Source: Podarcis filfolensis (taxonomy: Eukaryota). Taken from it: DNA of 64,000 nt. Below the pieces are notes generated by a model. It saw only the letters and a list, made by a program, of their open reading frames with translations. It searched no databases and had not been told where the DNA came from. The DNA lies in the NCBI GenBank assembly GCA_964270895.1, contig OZ185440.1, one strand, 5' to 3'. The position numbers were made by a program, and so were the translations under genes. Shown here in pieces: positions 1 through 63,750 of this stretch (positions within the stretch are counted from its first letter, which is position 1; each line of letters begins with the position of its first letter).

Positions 1-347
1 GCATATTTGCGCAGACTGAAAATGAAGAAAACAAATCGAACAGCCCATATTAGGACATTTTCCCACAAAAAACCTGAAAGTGTATTGTGTGATTATTTGG
101 GGGGCCCAGTGTGTTGCTCCCAGATTTATGCATGGAATTGTGGACTTGATCTGGATCTAACTCCAATATGTTCATATGTGACCACTGCTGATGCAGTATA
201 GTGGCATGCAAAAGGGAGCTACTTTAAAATTCAAATGTACATTCCAGCTTATGTAGGTTATCAACATGGGGGTGCAAATAGCACAGAGATTGATGGATGG
301 ATTATATTTCTATGCCGCTTTTCATTCAAATGAATCCCAAATAGGCT

Positions 348-21688: not shown

Positions 21689-21877
21689 NNNNNNNNNNNN
21701 NNNNNNNNNNNNNNNNNNNNNNNNNNNNNNNNNNNNNNNNNNNNNNNNNNNNNNNNNNNNNNNNNNNNNNNNNNNNNNNNNNNNNNNNNNNNNNNNNNNN
21801 NNNNNNNNNNNNNNNNNNNNNNNNNNNNNNNNNNNNNNNNNNNNNNNNNNNNNNNNNNNNNNNNNNNNNNNNNNNNN
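21689..21877. other. Assembly gap, 189 N, in PGM1 intron 1
   Basis: Run of N; the ORFs predicted across it are artefacts. Confidence 0.99.

Positions 21878-33885: not shown

Positions 33886-33921
<36 letters not shown>
33886..33921 (+). repeat. (GT)18 microsatellite
   Basis: Read directly from the sequence. Confidence 0.97.
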
Positions 33922-33924
<3 letters not shown>

Positions 33925-36612
33925 CATATTCTGTAAAATAGGGCCACTTTACACCATTTTGGGAAGGTGCATGTATGAAGAGTGGCATATAAATGCCTAA
34001 AATAAAAACAGCACACAAAACATAAGAATATCCATCTGGATCAGGCCAATGCCCTCTCTTGTCTAACACCCTGTTCTCACAGTGGCCAACTGGATGCCTA
34101 TGGACAGCCAGCAAGCAGGACCTGAGTGCAGCAGCACACTCCCCACTTATGATACCCAGCAGATGGTATTTAGAGATATACTGCCTCTGACTGTGAAGGT
34201 AGAATGTAGCCATTGTGGCAAGCAGCCATTGATAGGCTTGCTACCAAATATTCTGTCAACAGTGAGTTTCTTGCTGAACACACCTGTAGGATCCATGTGC
34301 TTCCAAGCCCGTACTTGTGACTTTCAAACTTTGGACTTAAAACATCCTAGGGGAGGGAGCAGCTAACCCCAAGTTGGGTGGGGACTGATCCAACCCCTCC
34401 AGTTTGTCTGCCCCTGCTGCCTGCTTCCAGCAATTTTGGCAGTAGTGGCAAGGGGAGTGGGGATGATGTAGATACAACGCTGGGGTTGTAGATACAACAC
34501 TGGAGCTCAGAACAACTATTATTATTATTTGTTAGCCACCATATCTTGCCCATGGCAACCGTCCACCGATACATTAATACCAAGAGGAAAAAGAAATACA
34601 TTAAAAACATCCCACCCACTTCTAAACGGCCACAAAAAAGCCAAAGGCCTTTCCCAGTCAGCAAATCGTTCATTTGATGAGCAGAGTAGAGGCAGTAACC
34701 CTGGATCAGCTGAGGCGGAGGGGTTGTGTGCCTGTCTGACTACCCACTTTTGACCACACCCATCACTGGCACGAAGCCCCTGAAGGACTAACCAAGGGTT
34801 AAAGTGGTCCTCAGACCAAGAAATGGTAAGCACTCCTATTCTAAGGGCAGCCCCTTAAAAAACATAGTACAAACTCAAATTTGGAGCCCAATCATTTTAA
34901 ACCTTTGAAAAATTCAACAATTAGACCATTAAGACTATAAATAATGCAAGTACAATAGGTATGTAAGGGGAGACAAGAGCAAATGGAGCACAAATGATAA
35001 GAGACTGAGCTACAAAACAGTAAATCTCCAGTTCAAATCCCGCTTCTGTAATGAACTCCTTAGATGGTCTTAGACATGCTACTCTCCCTCAGGCTCAACA
35101 TTTACAAAAGGGGGGTAATAGGGCTGACTTACTTTAGAGGGTTGTTGTATTGCAACTAGATAACGTATGTGAAACATTTTGAAAGTGCCAAACAAATGTT
35201 ATTATGTATTCTAGATTGGTTACAGGCATAGCTACACTTTGACTACTAAATGAAATCACCATAGACTAGAAATGCAAACCCAGGAGTGATGCATAGTGTC
35301 CCATCAAGGGTTCATTTAACGCAGCAATACTGATTTCCTATCTGGGACTGGGAAACCACAAGGATTGTCAGGGTCTGCGAGGCTGCAATGCATGGCTGGT
35401 GAACTTTGCACAGGTTGCTAGGTCTCAGGCTGTGCAGGCTTAAGAAGCCCAGATATTCAGTCTTACAAGTTTTATCCTTCTCCCTTGGAAAGATTACCTT
35501 TAAATAGTATTGGGCAATCTATTTACTTTCAGAGGGACAGAAAAACCTACTGATTTATTGCTCATGCCTCATTAGCATTTGTTTGAAATATGTACCTGAA
35601 GGATAGTTTCTTTCAAACTATGCTAATCATCATTTTAGTTCCTGCCTGGCGAGAGGCCAGCATTTTCGCTGCTAGGGAAGCGAGGCCTTTTTAGAACCAT
35701 GCCAAGAGGCCTAGCAATGCACTTGGCATTAAAGCTGCCTTTGGCAGAGGGGGCAGGGGTGGAAATCAAGAGTTTTAAAAAATATAAGAAGTGGACTTTT
35801 AACTGTCATGAGGTACATAACCACAAGCTTTTGCACAATCAAGGTCTTTGCAAAAGGTCACACAAATGCAAACATATTAAGAGGTAACTTAGGTCCATTT
35901 GCAAAGTTCCAAAAATCCTACTTTATTTTAAATTGAGGGTCACCTTTCAAGTGATTTGTTACGAGCTGCACGTACTCCTGCAGCAAAGCAAGAGAAACCA
36001 TATCTCTAATGCCTGAAAGGTTAAGCTAAATGTCAGAGATTGCCGAGCCTTTTGCAGTAGGCAAGAGGAGTGCCATCACAAACACCCCCCTCTAATGGCA
36101 ACGGATGTGTGTGTAAAAATAATTAACTTACCTAAGCAGTACCTCAATCCCAACTTGGTCTAACTTTACTGGTGTTTCGTTCTCTGTTAGCAGTCGCTAC
36201 AGTCACAAGAAACATTTTCATAAGGGGCACTCGGAACATCTTTTTGTCTACAGCACATCACTTGTGGTTGTCATTAAGGCAACACAAAACGGAAGAGAAT
36301 GGTAAAAAAAGAACTCTGTAGGCAGGATAATTTTTTCCTTTGAATTTGATACTAGAAATTTGTATTTGTTTTGGGATTTAAGCTTCAGGTGTGGAATTAG
36401 TTTTCCCTTCCTACCAATTTAGACAAGGATTTTAAATTCTCCCATGGCTATTTCTCTTGCTTATGACAATGCAATGGCGGTTCCATTCACCGGCAAATCT
36501 TGACAACACTCCACTCAAAACAATGGGGAGGGGACGCATAGAAGGAAGATTAGGAAAAATGAAACTTTATAATGATGCATACAGCCACTAGCCTAGTGCA
36601 CAGAGCCCATCA

Positions 36613-37510
<898 letters not shown>

Positions 37511-37608
37511 AGATTCGAGACATATTTCATTCATGACTATTTCACTTTGTTCAAACAAAATAAAAAAATCCCTTCCAGCAGCACCTTAGAGACCAACTAT
37601 GTTTGTTA

Positions 37609-37652
37609 TTGGTATGAGCTTTCGCGTGCATGCACACTTCTTCAGATACCAA
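37609..37652 (-). ncRNA. Minimal type I hammerhead ribozyme motif (Penelope-associated), intact core
   Basis: Minus strand reads UUGGUAU CUGAAGA A GUGUG-CAUG-CACGC GAAA GCUC AUACCAA: 7-bp stem I, conserved CUGANGA and GAAA, 5-bp stem II, palindromic AGCU stem III, NUH = CUC. Confidence 0.75.
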
Positions 37653-38063
37653 AGGATAAATGGACATAAATCTGATATCAGGAATCGCAAGACAGAGAAA
37701 CCAGTAGAAGACTTCAATCTCCCAGGACATTCTATACAAGATCTCAAAGTAGCTGTCTTATTACAAAAGAATTTCAGAAATAGACTGGAAAGAGAAGTTG
37801 CTGAATTGCAACTTATTACCAAACTTAAAACCATGGAGAGACCTGGTCTGAATAGAGACATTGGATTCTTATCTCATTATACATGATAAAGCTATTTTTA
37901 GCCATCTCACCCCTTGCTTTTTCCTGTAAGACCAATTGCAGTCGTTAACAGTCAACAGGTTTAGCACACCTATCAGCCAATCACCCATTCCCACCACCCT
38001 TCTGAGTAATACCCCTCCCCACCCTCTCACTATATATAAGGGTCTGGTGACTTTTGTTTCAGT

Positions 38064-38101
38064 GTATCTGAAGAAGTGTGCATGCACGCAACAGCTCATA
38101 C
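38064..38101 (+). ncRNA. Degenerate hammerhead copy (GAAA mutated to AACA)
   Basis: GUAU CUGAAGA A GUGUG-CAUG-CACGC AACA GCUC AUAC: same scaffold, two core substitutions. Confidence 0.65.
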
Positions 38102-40414
38102 CAATAACAAACTTAGTTGGTCTCTAAGGTGCTACTGGAAGGATTTTTAAAATTTTATCATAGACAAAGTCCAAGCTTTTATTTGTCCATCACCTTGCTC
38201 TTTGGGGGGCAAAACGGGGTCTTTGAGCTGTACATCAGCACTGCTAACATATATATAATCATCAACTAGTTCTCTTGCATATGGGTTACCAATCCACCTT
38301 CTGCTAGTGATTTTATTTGCTCACCTCCTTAAAAAAAAATCATATCTGAAGTATGGTATAATCCCTTCATTCCAGTTTTAACTGTATCAAAGCATGGTTA
38401 AGTGTAACAATCCTATATTACTTCCTTGCTTATCTGTCACCACCTCCCTCATCCTCCAATGTGTGCTGAATTTAAGATAGTAAGCTCCTCGGAAAGGGGC
38501 CAGCCCCTTTATACATTGAAAAACACCATGTATACACATACAATGTTAATTATAATCTATTTTATTCAATTAGGCCACAATTTTCAGAGAAGGGAAAATG
38601 GCTTGGGGGGGGTTAGGTCAATAATAAAGTCAAATGGTTAAAAACAAGGGATTGTAGCCAATGCTAATTTTACTCAGAGTAGACACATTGACATTAATAA
38701 GCACAACTTAGGTCCAGGAGTTCCCATGGGTCTACTCTGATTGGACCTTAGTTCGATACAACCCATTTTGATTTTTTTTAAAAGCTCAACAGATCAAAAC
38801 ATTCTAAAATAAGCATTATGTGCCACACAAATTGCTTTTGGAGTTTATAGCTCTGGGTTACTGTACACTGATGAGTTCTGAAGTGGAGCTTCTCAAACTG
38901 GTTACACTGAGCAATGTTTCCTGAAGTTGCAGTATCTTGGATACAGTTTTTTTCTGGATTAAAATCAGAAGCAAACTTCACTCCACTTTTTAAAAAGTGA
39001 TTTCTTCATAATAGAACAACGAGCAGTCAGGTAGAAGATTAAATACTGCATATGCCCCAGTTATTTAAAGTATTTTTACCCTACTTATCAGTGGCAAAAA
39101 GGCTCCCAGAATGTAATATAAATATAGATATAAATATAAATAATAAGACAATCCTTGTCCCTCAGGAATAAAATAAAAAATGCACAATATAAATGGAAAA
39201 AGAATTGGGATGGAAGAGGGGAAATAAGCCATTTTCATAACGGCTACTATTGGTAATGGAATGCTGCACTCAAGAGACTTTAGTCTGACCCTGCAGAGCC
39301 AAGTCATATGCTCTTATGGTGATGCTCAATTGTGTGTAGTTTCTCCAGTTTTCTTAGTTTACGAAATGTAGCCACAGATGTAGCCTTCTGTGATGGAAGA
39401 CTAAGTTGAGTGTGTGAGACAGGGGCTGCTTAACCCTTTCCCCCCAGATATTTCTCACAATCTTCTCCAGCTGTTTTACCTTGCAATGGGGGGGGGGGTT
39501 TATGGTTAGACAAAAAGAAACATGTACTTGTATTTTTGCCCCTCTGGATGAGAGGGGAGAAAGGAGTTTTGTAATGAAAAAACAATTTTAGCAGGGGTGA
39601 CCCCTCTCCTTATTTGGCAGCTGACACTTTGGCAAATGCATTTTATAAAAGAAGAAACTCAGAGAATAAATACTTGGAATAATAATTTCCCCAAATGTGG
39701 GCGTTTTTAGACAATTGACACCTGGGAAAGGTGTTTAATAGTCCTTAGAAGTCTGTGTGTGTCTGCCTAAGCCCTTAGACATTACTTCATGCTCTCAGAT
39801 ATGAAACATCTGGTTTGTGCAAAGTGAATAACTGCTTTAATCTAGTTTCAAATAGGCAAGTATTAGAAGAAGAAAAAACTCCACTTACTGTTCGGATAAA
39901 GGTCAGAGTTGCCTCATCTGAAGTCATGTAGAGACCTCTTGCAGGTTCTGCATGATGCTGTAACCTGCAGAGTGTGGCATGAGGATGGAGTTTGGAATTA
40001 TCTAGCAAAGCATTTATGCATATTGTCATAATTTTATAAAAGACTTAAAAAAAAAACTTAATACCATCACCGCTTAAAATTAAATAATTCAGCATCCTAC
40101 AAACCAAAGTATAAGCATGGTTTTGCAAATCCTATTTGACTTTCATGAAGCTTTATTTTACTTTAGAACAACAAAAAGCAGTTCTCATTATTTTGCTCTT
40201 AAAAAGTAGCTTACCAGAGGCTGATGCTTTCAGCTACAGTACAGGGAGGCCCACACTGGCAAGCCCTCTGAAAACAAGAATTCTGCCTTGTCTTTGGGTT
40301 ATATAGATGGTAACTACCAACAATTGTGCTAGATCATGTAGCCTTACTTTATGACGGAAGAGACGTACTTGTTTGGCTTTTTCAGTCCAATATAAAAAGG
40401 GAGATGGAAAAATC

Positions 40415-40560: not shown

Positions 40561-40926
40561 GTGTGCGCCGCCATAGACACCATGCATGGCAATATTTGGT
40601 AAATGGATGCCTTTATTCATGAGCAGCAAAAGGGATCAGTAGATGTTTGGTGATGGAAAAAATTGCATACACACAAAATCACACTATGCTTGCCCTGATA
40701 GAACAATTGCCAAGATTCTTAAGGTATACTGGTACAAGGAAATTTAGGACTTTAAAAATCAGTACCTTGATTTATTATTTTTACTTATCTCTCTATACTC
40801 TAGAGGCCTTCCTTATACTTTAGAATACATGGTTCACTTATTATTCCTTGTTTAAACATGTTGTTTTAGCTTCTCTGTTTAAAAATTACTTTCCAAACAT
40901 GAAGTTTTCATTAGTTCTACAGTTTC

Positions 40927-40929
<3 letters not shown>

Positions 40930-40991
<62 letters not shown>
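40930..40991 (+). repeat. Compound (TA)20(CA)11 microsatellite
   Basis: Read directly from the sequence. Confidence 0.95.
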
Positions 40992-41863
40992 AACATATAT
41001 ATGAGAACAGTTTTAGACAGACTTAAGCAGGCAGTTTCTGCACTCGACCAAGCATGGTTTAAATTTCATAACTGACATTTACTTGCCTAGTATCCTGTTA
41101 CGGCATAAGAAGCCAGTCTACAAGAGTGGCTGTGATATAAATATAGCTTTTCAAGACTTCTTGCACTTTCTTAGACAAGGTCATATAAATCTGATCTCTT
41201 ATTTAAATTATAAGCCTGTTTTTAGTAGGCAGTTGTAACATTTCCTCATAGGCGTTTTGAAACTTTTTCAATTCTCCCTTTTGAAATGTGAAAACCAGAA
41301 CTGTACACAGTACTCCAAGGGCAGTTGCACCAAAGATATGTATTGGCTCGGTTTTTCTCAATTCTTTATCTAATTAACCCTGACATGGTAATCATTTTTT
41401 CCATAGGTGTCATACATTGTGTTGCCATTTTCATTGAACTATCCACCACTGCTCCTAGCCAGTAACTGCCAGTTCAAAACTTGAAAACATATACATCAAA
41501 TTAGGATTTTTTACCCCAATGTACATCACTTTATACTTGCTTACATTCACTCACATTGGCTATTTTGATGCTCATTCATCCAGTTTGGAAGGCTGCTTCT
41601 GGAGCTCCTTTCTGTTCTTACTGTCATAAACAATTTGGGATCGTCAGCAAACTTTGCTACCTTATTGCTCATTCCTAACTCTTGGCCATTTATAAACAAG
41701 TTTAAAAACAGCAATCCAAATAATGATCCTATTCTTATATCCCTTCTTTGTAAGAACTCTCCATTTATTCCTACTCTCTGCTTCCTGTTCTGTAGACACT
41801 TACTGGTTCCTAACAGGACCTGTCATTTCCCCTAACTGCTTATGAGTCTTTAACGGACATTAA

Positions 41864-42513: not shown

Positions 42514-42949
42514 TGTGGTGTAAGCTGACAGCCCTTGCTTGAATCAGTATCTGAGCAAGCAAACAGCAGAGCAGTGGGAGCTGAAAGTGTTGGCAGCAGG
42601 GGTGCCAACTTGAATAAAATATGGGGGGCAGGTAAAGCCTGCCCTGCATAATAGAACACATGATGGAGTACACACACACCATTATTATTTCCCCTGCACC
42701 TGATGTCAAGTGGATGCAGCTTGGCAGAAATAGTCTTGTGGGCTAAATTGGGGCTGGGGAGCCTAATTAGATCTGCAGCTGGAAGTTCCTCACCCCTGGC
42801 AAAATAACTTGCTAGTGATAGGGGTAGCAATGTGTAAACTTCCTGTTGGTTATTGGGAGGTTATTGGTTTGTTTTAGTTTTATTATATATTTTGTATTCT
42901 CATTTTCTGTTGTGAACCATCCTGGGATCTTTGGATGAAGGGTGGGATA

Positions 42950-42951
<2 letters not shown>

Positions 42952-42985
<34 letters not shown>
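42952..42985 (+). repeat. (AC)17 microsatellite following an L2-like 3' tail
   Basis: Read directly from the sequence. Confidence 0.95.
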
Positions 42986-42986
<1 letters not shown>

Positions 42987-43474
42987 ATACAATATCTAAT
43001 GGATATGCTCAAAGTGTTAACATCTCAAAGATCTCTAAAAGGTTAGTTAGACAAGACTTACCTCTTGTAGAACCCATGCTGTTTCTCCTTCAGCAAGACT
43101 TATTCTTCCATATGCTTGGCAATCCTAGCTATAACAATGCTTTCCACCAGTTTTCCCATGACAGACATTAATTTCTCTCATGGATGGATGCCCTATGGAT
43201 CAGCTGATTTGGCAGTTTTTATTTCATCAATGAAGTCTAGAATTTCATCTCTTGTCACCACTGTTTATTTCAGTTCCCAAGATTCCATTTCTTAGAAAGT
43301 TAGCTAAAGCACAGGGATCTCTTACATCGTTTGCAGTGAAGATTGAATTCTTTGCATCTATGCAATCTCCTTTTCCTCCTTTAACACGTCTTTGACTCCT
43401 TTGTCACCCAACAGTTGAACCGCCTCTCTAGCTGCTTTCCTCCTTTAATGTATTCAATATTATTTATTGTTGAT

Positions 43475-49523: not shown

Positions 49524-50297
49524 CTATAAAGAGTGAGGGGGGGACATTTGTTATATCTATCATTGTAGATATCATATTTTGATCCATTCAATGAAAGGAA
49601 CCTGAAAATGACCTTAGACCTGTTCTATTTGATGACCTAAAACTGCAAGATAGGCACAACAGTTGGTTTTAAAAGCCTTGAATGCTCCTTCCCTGGTTAG
49701 CTATGATTGTGACAATGCTACATAATGTTCTGCTACAGTTAATGCTAACAATGGAGCAGGGAGCAGCCAGTGCTCCCCTGATGACTGAAATGGACCGTTA
49801 TCTTATTTCCAAGCTATAACTGGGGACTACTTATCCTTACATGGCCATGGACAATATCTGAAGAGGTAGCAAATGCATATGCATGCCAGAGAATATTCTC
49901 AGCTTCAATTTTTGCTTCATCTGAAAAGCTGCTTTGCCTCTTTGGCCAAAGGAACTGCTGCAGCAAGAACCACCACCAATTGCCAGCTGCACTGTTTTTG
50001 GATTCCATTCCATATTGTCAGTCTCATTAGTCCCTTTTACCTGCTGGACTGGAGAAAGTTTTGGATACTTTCCCTTTGGATAACAGATGTGATGCCTTTA
50101 CTTTGGGTATCTATATGACACATAAACTATTAATTAATTTGGGGTCCCTCCCAACTCTACAATTCTATGATTCTATGATAACATGCAAAGCTTGAAGCAC
50201 ATACTTACATTACGACTTTGTAACTGGTTCAACTTAAGATCAGCAAAATTACACATTGTGGCTACTTCCCCCTCACCTTGCCCAACACTGATCATAC

Positions 50298-50446
50298 CTC
50301 AGTCAATTCCAATGCTTTGTTGTAGCCCATTGACCGCAAAGTCATCCAGAGACTGCTAAGATCCCTGTCTTGTTGACTGGCTTCCATGAGATTCAGATCC
50401 ATAAATCCCTGTCTTGTGAGTTCATTATTCTTCATATCAAAATTCT
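50298..50446 (-). CDS. EFCAB7: EFCAB7 internal exon (ENFDMKNNELTRQGFMDLNLMEASQQDRDLSSLWMTLRSMGYNKALELTE)
   Basis: gttttcttAG acceptor, GAG|GTATGA donor, 149 nt. Confidence 0.96.
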
Positions 50447-53002
50447 CTAAGAAAACATAAGGCAAATATTTTCACAGGCTACAGTGGAAACGATCAAAAT
50501 TGCCTGTATTCAGGAGAAACAAACATTGGATTCCATCCCTTGGCCCTTCCCATCCCTCTTTTCATTTTGTTGTTTGCCACACTTGCTCCTCTCTTACTTC
50601 CTTTGTTCACATTGCCTCCTACTGTAAGCTCCTTTAGGCAGGCCTGTGTCTTTTTGATTTGTGAAACTCTGTGAAGAACCGGCACTTTGATGGCAATGTT
50701 TGCATCAGCGGTGGAGAACCTATGGCCCTCCTAATGTTGTTGGACTGCAACTCCCATCATCCCCAGCCGTCAAGGAAATAATAAGGGAAGACAGGAGCTG
50801 TCGTATATACCAGATTCCCCAGTCCTGGTATATATGTCAGTAATTATAAAGGTTTGATTTTGCATCCTTGTGTTTCAGAAAATTTGTTATGAAATGTATA
50901 CATGACAAAGTTATTTATTTGGCTTCACGGAAAACTCAACATGCAAGAAATGACAAATTAAATGAGTTTCTCTTGAAATTATTTGAGGCAGTGGGTGGAG
51001 TTTTATCAGCAAATCAATAAAAACCTTGGCCACAAATTGTGGTTCGTTGTAAGGTCTCTTATGGCTTTCTTCTTCCCAGGGCAAGCAGGGAAGAGCAAAT
51101 TGGCCAAGATGGGCATATTCATGGTAAACTATTAACTATGATATACTGTGATGCATGAAAGAGGCTAATGGCCAATCCCCATTTTTGGAAACAGCAACCT
51201 AGATCAGTAGTAACCTAGATTTCTTCAGCAACAAGAATAAACACAATATTGGCTTTTAAATCAATGGAAGACAAGGTATTGCAAAGTAAATGAATACAGT
51301 ATATAAACAATGTCTACAGTCTGCAGTGTATAATTGTGGAGGGTGAACCAAGCGGCAATCCTTGGTATGAGAACTGGATTGATACAAGAATGCCACTATA
51401 TTTGCATCTATGAAATTATCATTCACTTTCATCACTGAGAGAGGCTTTTATGTTATGGATGCTGTGAGCTCATATCTTAGATAAGTTTGATTTTTGAAAA
51501 GTAATATGGTTCCAATAATATTCAGCAAATTCTTCTAGCAAATTCTTGCTAGAAAACCAGGTCATCAAGCAAATACAAAATTAAAATGTTCTTAAAGCAC
51601 AGAATATTTAAAAATGGATTTCTCATCTTCATTACAATGCTAATTCTTTACTATGTATTATTTAAAAGAGATTACCAAATGAATAAATCTAAGGGTTCAG
51701 GTGCTATTATAAACTGCTTGAACTTTGTTCTCAAGATTTATGAGGTTCATCTGAACCCTCCAGCTGATTAATTGCCAAGTAATCTATTCACAGCTTTTGC
51801 TGTTGCTTCCTTTTGACGGGCCGGCTAATGTCTTCTAAGTATTGTTGCTGTGTTTGTTCCAGAAAATGTAAGAATTAATGAGAAATGGATATACATTCCC
51901 TTGTTCTCTGACTTGTGTCCCCTACTCTCAAATATATAGGAAACCAAATGCACAAAATGCAAAGCCAAAGCTGAGAACTTTATGTCTGCCCAAAGGCTTG
52001 GGCATGTCCAGTGAGATTTTTATAATTCGCTTCTTTGAGCAACAGATTTTGAGATCTTCATGGAAGTCCCCTCAATTTCAATTTCCCTTGGGCATATGGA
52101 ATTAGTCACATGGTCCTTTGGACTGAAGCCATCATATAAAGGATGTCTGAATTTGTGTTCCTTAATGAAAACATAAAAAGCTCTAAAGATTTTACAGAGT
52201 AATATGAAACAGGATCTGTCAAATGCTGAATATTTTAGCCGGAATTAACAAAGCACCGCAGCCTTTAAAATGTCTATTTAAGCTGTTGCAAGCCTACTGG
52301 TACACCTCATTAATTCCAGTTTCTATTTTGTGCTGTAATAATAACGAAGTTTCTCATAAGCATTAATGAATTTACCTTCATATCATCCATGTGCGAGATC
52401 ATTTATTCTTAGCATGCAATTCCTAATTTGTGATACTGAAGGCCAAATAAGAAGTGACAATAAATTGAACTATGTCTGTGGATTATGAATAGTTGAATGC
52501 TTAGATGAAAGTCTCCGAAGGCATGCACAGTCATAGTTTTATCAAACGTATTTACAATCTAAAAATTCAAAACTGAGAACATACAGCACTCTGGATGAGT
52601 AAGGGCTAATTCAATTCTCTTCCATGTCAGGAAATGCAATTCCTGCCATGCATGAACTCATTACGCACTTCCCAACAATAAGGAGAATGAGGTGGCATGC
52701 ATTTGTGCACACATGCTGAACAGACATAGTTTTCAATGCGGTTACGTGAACCTCCTGAAGTTTTATTTGCAATGAAATATATCTACATATACAGGAACAT
52801 TTATGCAGCCAGATTTTTCCAAAGGCGTGAACACATTATAAAACTTTTTTAAAAAATGCAATTGACATGAATGAATGAATGATTATTATGATGACCAAGC
52901 AGCCAGCATAACATGGGCCCTTTCATGCAAACACAAATCTATTCTGTCTCCCTTCCCCCTCTGAGTGCCAATATCTCAATATTCTTTTTTATGTAATAGA
53001 AC

Positions 53003-54592: not shown

Positions 54593-54770
54593 CTGAAAGG
54601 TTGAAGAGAAAAAGCAGCTCAACAGATTGTCTGCTTCCTTCATTTCATCCCTTGGACTCACTCATCAGTTCATTTCAGAAGACGGATTTCTTTGGGAGAC
54701 AATTTTTTCAGCAACATATTTTTGTTAAAATATGAAGAGCCTAAATTTCACAAAAGCTGGCCTGCCTTAC

Positions 54771-63267: not shown

Positions 63268-63750
63268 TAGAATCATAGAATCATAGAGTTGGAAGAGACC
63301 ACAAGGGCCATCGAGTCCAACCCCCTGCCAAGCAGGAAACACCATCAGAGCACTCCTGACATATGGTTGTCAAGCCTCTGCTTAAAGACCTCCAAAGAAG
63401 GAGACTCCACCACACTCCTTGGCAAGCAAATTCCACTGTCGAACAGCTCTTACTGTCAGGAAGTTCTTCCTAATGTTTAGGTGGAATCTTCTTTCTTGTA
63501 GTTTGGATCCATTGCTCCGTGTCCGCTTCTCTGGAGCAGCAGAAAACAACCTTTCTCCCTCCTCTATGTGACATCCTTTTATATATTTGAACATGGCTAT
63601 CATATCACCCCTTAACCTCCTCTTCTCCAGGCTAAACATGCCCAGCTCCCTTAGCCGTTCCTCATAAGGCATCGTTTCCAGGCCTTTGACCATTTTGGTT
63701 GCCCTCCTCTGGACACGTTCCAGTTTGTCAGTGTCCTTCTTGAACTGTGG
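63268..63750 (-). mobile_element. Relatively young 5'-truncated CR1 LINE
   Basis: ORF 63382-63693 reads MVKGLETMPYEERLRELGMFSLEKRRLRGDM...RTRSNG.KLQERRFHLNIRKNFLTVRAV. There is a 1-bp frameshift near WNLL and a (TTCTATGA)n tail. Confidence 0.95.

Follow-up and report, generated by a model that had tools for sequence, protein, structure and literature searches.

Minimal type I hammerheads are a regular component of the retroelements known as Penelope-like elements (PLEs), where they occupy the terminal repeats beside the ORF for reverse transcriptase and GIY-YIG endonuclease (Cervera and De la Pena 2014, PMC4209133). They are recognized by the CUGANGA and GAAA boxes, a G10.1-C11.1 pair, a base left unpaired between positions 9 and 10.1, a short helix I, a longer helix II and a helix III that consists of a palindrome. 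Pairs of such hammerheads on opposite strands, 100-700 bp apart, are frequent (PMC4209133). A lizard example is the Poseidon PLE of Anolis carolinensis (PAc; PMC11167929), which encodes a GIY-YIG endonuclease, carries its hammerhead in a pseudo-LTR and uses its 3' tail as the start of reverse transcription. The protein of this element cuts and extends both target strands in vitro, and its hammerhead, when assayed, cleaved only after that protein had been added; no RNA-seq reads start or end at the cut site (PMC11167929).

Two further groups are relevant to the comparison. Domesticated hammerheads are known from amniote genes, namely HH9 and HH10 in RECK, CTCL and DTNB introns and those of the Clec2 3' UTR (PMC6155905). 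These are of type I and probably of retroelement origin, lie sense-oriented within or close to a host gene, and are canonical in form, with a stable helix III, loop-loop contacts, activity as monomers and conservation across orders. The hammerheads of newt satellite 2 and avocado sunblotch viroid, in contrast, have an unstable helix III and work only when two copies pair within one RNA (Forster et al. 1988, cited in PMC6155905); both occur as tandem repeats on the same strand, in which a partner is always present.

The motif considered here lies on the minus strand at 37609-37652 of a 64,000-nucleotide stretch of contig OZ185440.1 from Podarcis filfolensis (assembly GCA_964270895.1), which we refer to as the window. 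It shares all of the PLE hammerhead traits listed above and differs from the published minimal forms in nothing essential, the one departure being a helix I of 7 bp that is supplied in part by an insertion junction. It resembles PAc in the features given above, and there are two differences: the window element is dead and truncated and codes for no protein, and its hammerhead is known from sequence whereas that of PAc has been assayed. The domesticated hammerheads resemble it in type, in probable origin and in their sense orientation in or near a gene, but the window motif has neither a helix III nor loops for tertiary contacts, is positioned upstream of the gene and not within the transcript, and shows no sign of constraint. 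Unlike the newt and viroid motifs, it has only one other copy at the locus, which is on the opposite strand and mutated. In our judgement the motif is, with a probability of about 0.9, a neutral relic of a single Penelope-like retroelement insertion, which makes it an already known kind of transposable-element relic.

Anatomy and predicted fold of the motif

The minus-strand letters from 37652 to 37609 are identical to those transcribed in the first-pass annotation, and direct inspection of the sequence bore out both that reading and the intact core which it reported. From 5' to 3' the motif comprises the first strand of helix I (37652-37646), the CUGAAGA box (37645-37639), the extra A that follows A9 and precedes G10.1 (37638), helix II with its 5 bp, one of them G.U, and a 4-nt loop (37637-37624), the run G12 A13 A14 A15.1 (37623-37620), then G15.2, C16.2 and U16.1 (37619-37617), C17 (37616) and the second strand of helix I (37615-37609). 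Every nucleotide of the general hammerhead core is present, that is C3 U4 G5 A6 N7 G8 A9, G12 A13 A14, the A15.1-U16.1 pair and H17. The two strands of helix I form a perfect 7-bp duplex. Cleavage is predicted after C17, between 37616 and 37615, which is the position that had been proposed for it.

The fold is less complete than the core. RNAfold recovered helices I and II (-13 kcal/mol, z -2.2), but in place of a third helix there is only the A15.1-U16.1 pair closing around two nucleotides, the four together forming the palindrome AGCU. A monomer of this sequence cannot close helix III and does not reach the three-helix hammerhead fold.

The hammerhead covariance models of Rfam expect a helix III hairpin and probably miss forms that lack one. 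A search with Infernal and these models had been suggested as a check; no match was returned at the gathering score in the whole window, nor at E values up to 10 in pieces of 701 nt and 71 nt. As the motif is a minimal form without helix III, we consider this negative result to be weak evidence and not a disproof.

The Penelope-like insertion and its family

Judged by the arrangement of its parts, the motif belongs to the inverted 5' arm of a 5'-truncated PLE that extends from approximately 37545 to 38172. The arms form an inverted repeat (37557-37649 and 38064-38156) of 93 nt, 90% complementary, with a spacer of 414 nt. The inverted arm (37545-37649, minus strand; outer boundary approximate) reproduces the element's 3' end, with the hammerhead from GUAU onwards and the tail, and stands head to head with the forward copy. 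The forward copy begins at 37650 with the end of a truncated ORF (37650-37886, plus strand), in which the final 78 codons of the GIY-YIG endonuclease region are followed by a stop codon at 37884-37886. Set against the 233-aa ORF of family copy L041, this fragment lacks one codon and shows 91% identity to the C-terminus. The L041 ORF scores above the Pfam cut-off for GIY-YIG (26.5 versus 22.6 bits) and bears the YIGQT...R...H motif. The hammerheads are thus found in a PLE 3' region or terminal repeat beside a C-terminal GIY-YIG ORF. The reverse-transcriptase part is missing from the truncated window copy, and none was seen in the short contigs that hold the other family copies.

A 3' untranslated, pseudo-LTR-like segment follows at 37887-38063 (plus strand). 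Within it we note a TATA-like box, ctatatataagg, at 38030-38043 (plus strand), some 25-30 nt upstream of the forward hammerhead, which is also conserved in L001 and L002 of the family; this box is the probable promoter of the PLE pseudo-LTR and is directed away from PGM1. The forward hammerhead occupies 38064-38104 (plus strand) and is succeeded by the 3' tail of the forward copy (38105-38172, plus strand; outer boundary approximate). The first-pass annotation had treated this native-orientation copy as a hammerhead with a shorter stem. Its helix I is indeed only 4 bp, but the copy is not merely shorter-stemmed, since a CpG transition has turned G12 into A at 38090 and A14 has become C at 38092; on these two core substitutions the forward copy is catalytically dead.

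An inverted 5'-truncated copy adjacent to a 5'-truncated element is a typical PLE build (PMC8557442), and the two head-to-head 3'-end copies are explained if both target strands were cleaved and extended. The anatomy and the literature together suggest the following course of events. The GIY-YIG endonuclease of the element would have cleaved the target on both strands, and each of the resulting 3' ends would have served as a primer for reverse transcription that began at the 3' end of the element RNA. The outcome would be two copies of the 3' end in head-to-head orientation, the short one at 37545-37649 (minus strand) and the longer one at 37650-38172 (plus strand), each of which would have carried in the minimal hammerhead of the element itself. 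During the life cycle of the element such a motif would help to process element RNA only when a second copy, or the protein of the element, is available. The lone copy that was left beside PGM1 is most likely inert.

The family was defined from ten copies aligned via blastn, namely the two window copies and eight from other assemblies (ENA sample ERZ27260045 and Logan run ERR14042347), the latter fetched via short ORFs overlapping the element. Over approximately 90 nt these copies are 88-94% alike, as expected of a multi-copy consensus family. The extra A and the G10.1-C11.1 pair are present in all ten. The first-pass annotation had held that an extra A between A9 and G10.1 is tolerated in a natural viroid hammerhead (CChMVd); an extra base at this place is a family trait of PLE hammerheads (PMC4209133). 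The AGCU palindrome, with its 15.2-16.2 G-C pair, is retained in eight copies, the window motif included, and reads AACU in L037_b and AGUU in L039. With the published traits all fitting, the assignment to the minimal type I hammerheads of PLEs with a palindromic helix III is supported. The head-to-head build recurs in the independent copies L001, L002 and L037 with different junction sites. In the L037 insertion the opposed arms, at 59-151 (minus strand) and 239-331 (plus strand), are only about 88 nt apart; one of these arms has the G12A change, and the other has a mismatch in helix II and a broken helix III palindrome.

The alignment also accounts for the unusual helix I. In nine of the ten copies GUAU is preceded by UUUCAGU, so the helix I of the family is only 4 bp. 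UUG is found at this position in the PGM1-side copy alone, and it is the reverse complement of CAA, the first codon of the truncated ORF piece. The proposal that the inversion junction had lengthened helix I, to 7 bp here compared with 4 bp in the family, therefore holds. Microhomology was considered as the origin of the 7-bp helix and set aside: the junction shares a single base (C), and for this reason we treat the three extra pairs as a coincidence, which is expected by chance in about 1 in 64 insertions.

Position beside PGM1 and capacity to cleave

The coding part of PGM1 exon 1 lies at 36922-37167 (minus strand), as indicated by the translation of its ORF and by relatives with the PF02878 domain, inside a CpG island at approximately 36750-37500. 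The ORF opens with MVKIV... at the start codon at 37167 and is on the same strand as the motif. The predicted cut site is accordingly 448 nt upstream of the start codon, in agreement with the distance of about 450 nt given earlier, and the PGM1-sense orientation claimed for the motif follows from its location in the inverted 5' arm of the insertion. The observed/expected ratio of CpG is 0.76-0.99 in 36750-37500, 0.55 in 37500-37750 and 0.0-0.18 in the bins beyond; the left end of the insertion coincides with the drop in CpG density at approximately 37500-37550. We also note a TTTAAGA directly followed by a GGGCGG box at 37315-37327 (minus strand), about 150 nt upstream of the PGM1 ATG, as a candidate core promoter. 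The sequence hints at a PGM1 start site approximately 300 nt downstream of the motif, which would thus probably lie upstream of the transcript. Further upstream of PGM1, an EF-hand-like exon ORF at 50292-50465 (minus strand) is consistent with EFCAB7 on the same strand; as a single exon ORF it weakly indicates the identity of this neighbour.

Other features of the window include two LINE remnants on the minus strand, a reverse-transcriptase fragment with the FADD box at 41547-41714 and a CR1-type ORF2 C-terminus at 63382-63693. Microsatellites at 33886-33929, (GT)n, at 40922-41009, (TA)n(CA)n, and at 42937-42998, (CA)n, account for most of the inverted-repeat matches in the window. A run of N at 21689-21877 represents an assembly gap or a masked stretch.

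Whether the motif could cleave in this setting depends on a partner or on a cofactor, and the available indications are unfavourable. No second hammerhead that might serve as a dimer partner was found on the minus strand in the 64-kb window; a candidate at 54643-54668 was rejected as it is without helix II. The intermolecular AGCU/AGCU duplex contributes only -3.9 kcal/mol, and two copies of the motif are predicted to pair through the palindromic helix II instead. For PLE hammerheads in general, cleavage of a single minimal motif was undetectable in vitro, and dimers gave only low cleavage, mostly at non-physiological Mg (PMC4209133).

The predicted folding of a longer transcript is also unfavourable. 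In the predicted structure of a 661-nt minus-strand RNA (-263 kcal/mol, z -14.5), the motif is contained wholly within a stem of approximately 95 bp formed with the other arm. Burial in read-through RNA is to be expected because the antisense of the forward arm is transcribed first. With no helix III and with this predicted burial, the motif does not have the monomer-competent fold of a domesticated hammerhead.

The same hairpin raises the possibility that the inverted repeat, and not the ribozyme, is the functional unit of the locus, either as double-stranded RNA, formed on transcription in either direction and feeding small-RNA or RNA-editing pathways, or, as DNA, by marking where the PGM1 CpG island ends upstream. 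The 93-nt arms with their 90% complementarity and 414-nt spacer, the very high stability predicted for the hairpin and the position of the left end of the insertion at the fall in CpG density are all compatible with such a role. The head-to-head layout, however, is a generic by-product of PLE insertion that is present in unrelated copies, and arms that have drifted to 90% are what would be expected without constraint. We regard this reading as unlikely.

Neutral decay and the question of recruitment

To see whether the intact core of the motif is evidence of selection, we asked how the other family copies have fared. The whole motif is intact in four of the ten. Among the remainder, G12 is changed to A in four copies and A13 to G in one, while one copy has changes in helices II and III. 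Departures from the family majority amount to 6 of 120 positions in the core (5.0%) and 20 of 412 in the tail (4.9%); core and tail thus change equally often, and the intactness of individual copies fits neutral decay. The usual casualty is the catalytic G12 (four of the six core changes among the ten copies), because it is the second base of the C11.1-G12 CpG (37624-37623 and 38089-38090 in the window; also in L001, L037 and L039). By this count, CpG decay is the main way in which the hammerheads of this PLE family die.

The window arms can be examined separately. Polarized by the L001 copies, the minus-strand arm and its dead twin alike have about three derived changes per 82 nt. In the minus-strand arm none of the approximately three changes falls in the 44-nt motif (P of about 0.1 under neutrality), and none is found in the 12-16 essential sites (P of about 0.5). 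If each site has a probability of change of about 5%, all of 12-16 core sites would escape with a probability of about 0.44-0.54. The intact core is accordingly explained by an insertion of moderately young age, at which about half of the copies would be expected to remain core-intact. Counting against a neutral history, besides the three extra pairs in helix I and the motif free of derived changes, is that the minus-strand arm has kept both CpGs of CACGCG, of which the twin has lost one. Low methylation on the shore of the PGM1 CpG island may have spared the CpGs of the motif, including that of G12, although such protection is not needed to account for its intactness. Selection on the PGM1-side copy is unsupported.

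Searches for the same insertion in relatives were directed at several parts of the locus. Relatives of PGM1 exon 1 were recovered in five contigs, in which only the exon aligns (85% identity), with no upstream homology; since only the exon is shared, these contigs are not from close relatives. Searches spanning the junction and with the tail of the ORF found other family copies and no orthologue. A metagenome scan with a hammerhead 20-mer found nothing, and a 17-mer from the tail gave 24 metagenome and four viral matches, all of which were discarded as chance matches with no hammerhead upstream.

These observations bear directly on the proposal of the first-pass annotation that the motif is an exapted, active ribozyme by which sense transcripts, whether EFCAB7 read-through or initiated upstream, are severed ahead of the PGM1 promoter, making it an insulator at the RNA level. 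In favour of the proposal are the intact core in the sense orientation 448 nt upstream of the PGM1 ATG, a helix I lengthened by the junction to 7 bp, a minus-strand arm without derived changes within the motif, and the precedent of domesticated hammerheads in amniote genes (PMC6155905). Against it, helix III and a same-strand partner are both lacking, PLE minimal hammerheads tested singly were inactive in vitro, the one from a lizard PLE depends on protein, and in read-through RNA the motif is predicted to be taken up in a duplex of about 95 bp. Furthermore, its intactness matches the neutral expectation, it probably lies upstream of the PGM1 start site, and it is unlike the known domesticated hammerheads, which are canonical, with a real helix III and loop-loop contacts. 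We do not uphold the insulator proposal and consider it very unlikely.

A variant of this idea would supply the missing component in trans, such that the lone hammerhead, made sufficiently stable by its longer helix I, cleaves sense transcripts entering the PGM1 promoter with the help of a second RNA molecule, or of PLE protein from elsewhere in the genome, and has been kept by the host as a co-transcriptional terminator; we consider this highly improbable. That the sequence is a chance match to the hammerhead consensus, unrelated to ribozymes, is barely credible: the Rfam models give no match and the loose CTGANGA...GAAA pattern occurs nine times in the window against 4.8 expected, but a stricter pattern matches at a single locus of the window where 0.25 would be expected, the published traits of PLE minimal hammerheads are all present, and the family alignment, in which nine other copies beside a GIY-YIG ORF are homologous for more than 90 nt, refutes it.

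The neutral-relic interpretation is thus the one that we favour. If the insulator reading were true, this would be the first PLE hammerhead without helix III to have been recruited by a host gene and would represent a new kind of promoter insulation, through the self-cleavage of RNA. As it stands, the motif beside PGM1 adds a further copy to a transposon motif that is already well described. The CpG at G12 may explain why a copy has survived beside an unmethylated CpG island, and in lizard genomes that are rich in PLEs an intact core alone is a poor flag of function.
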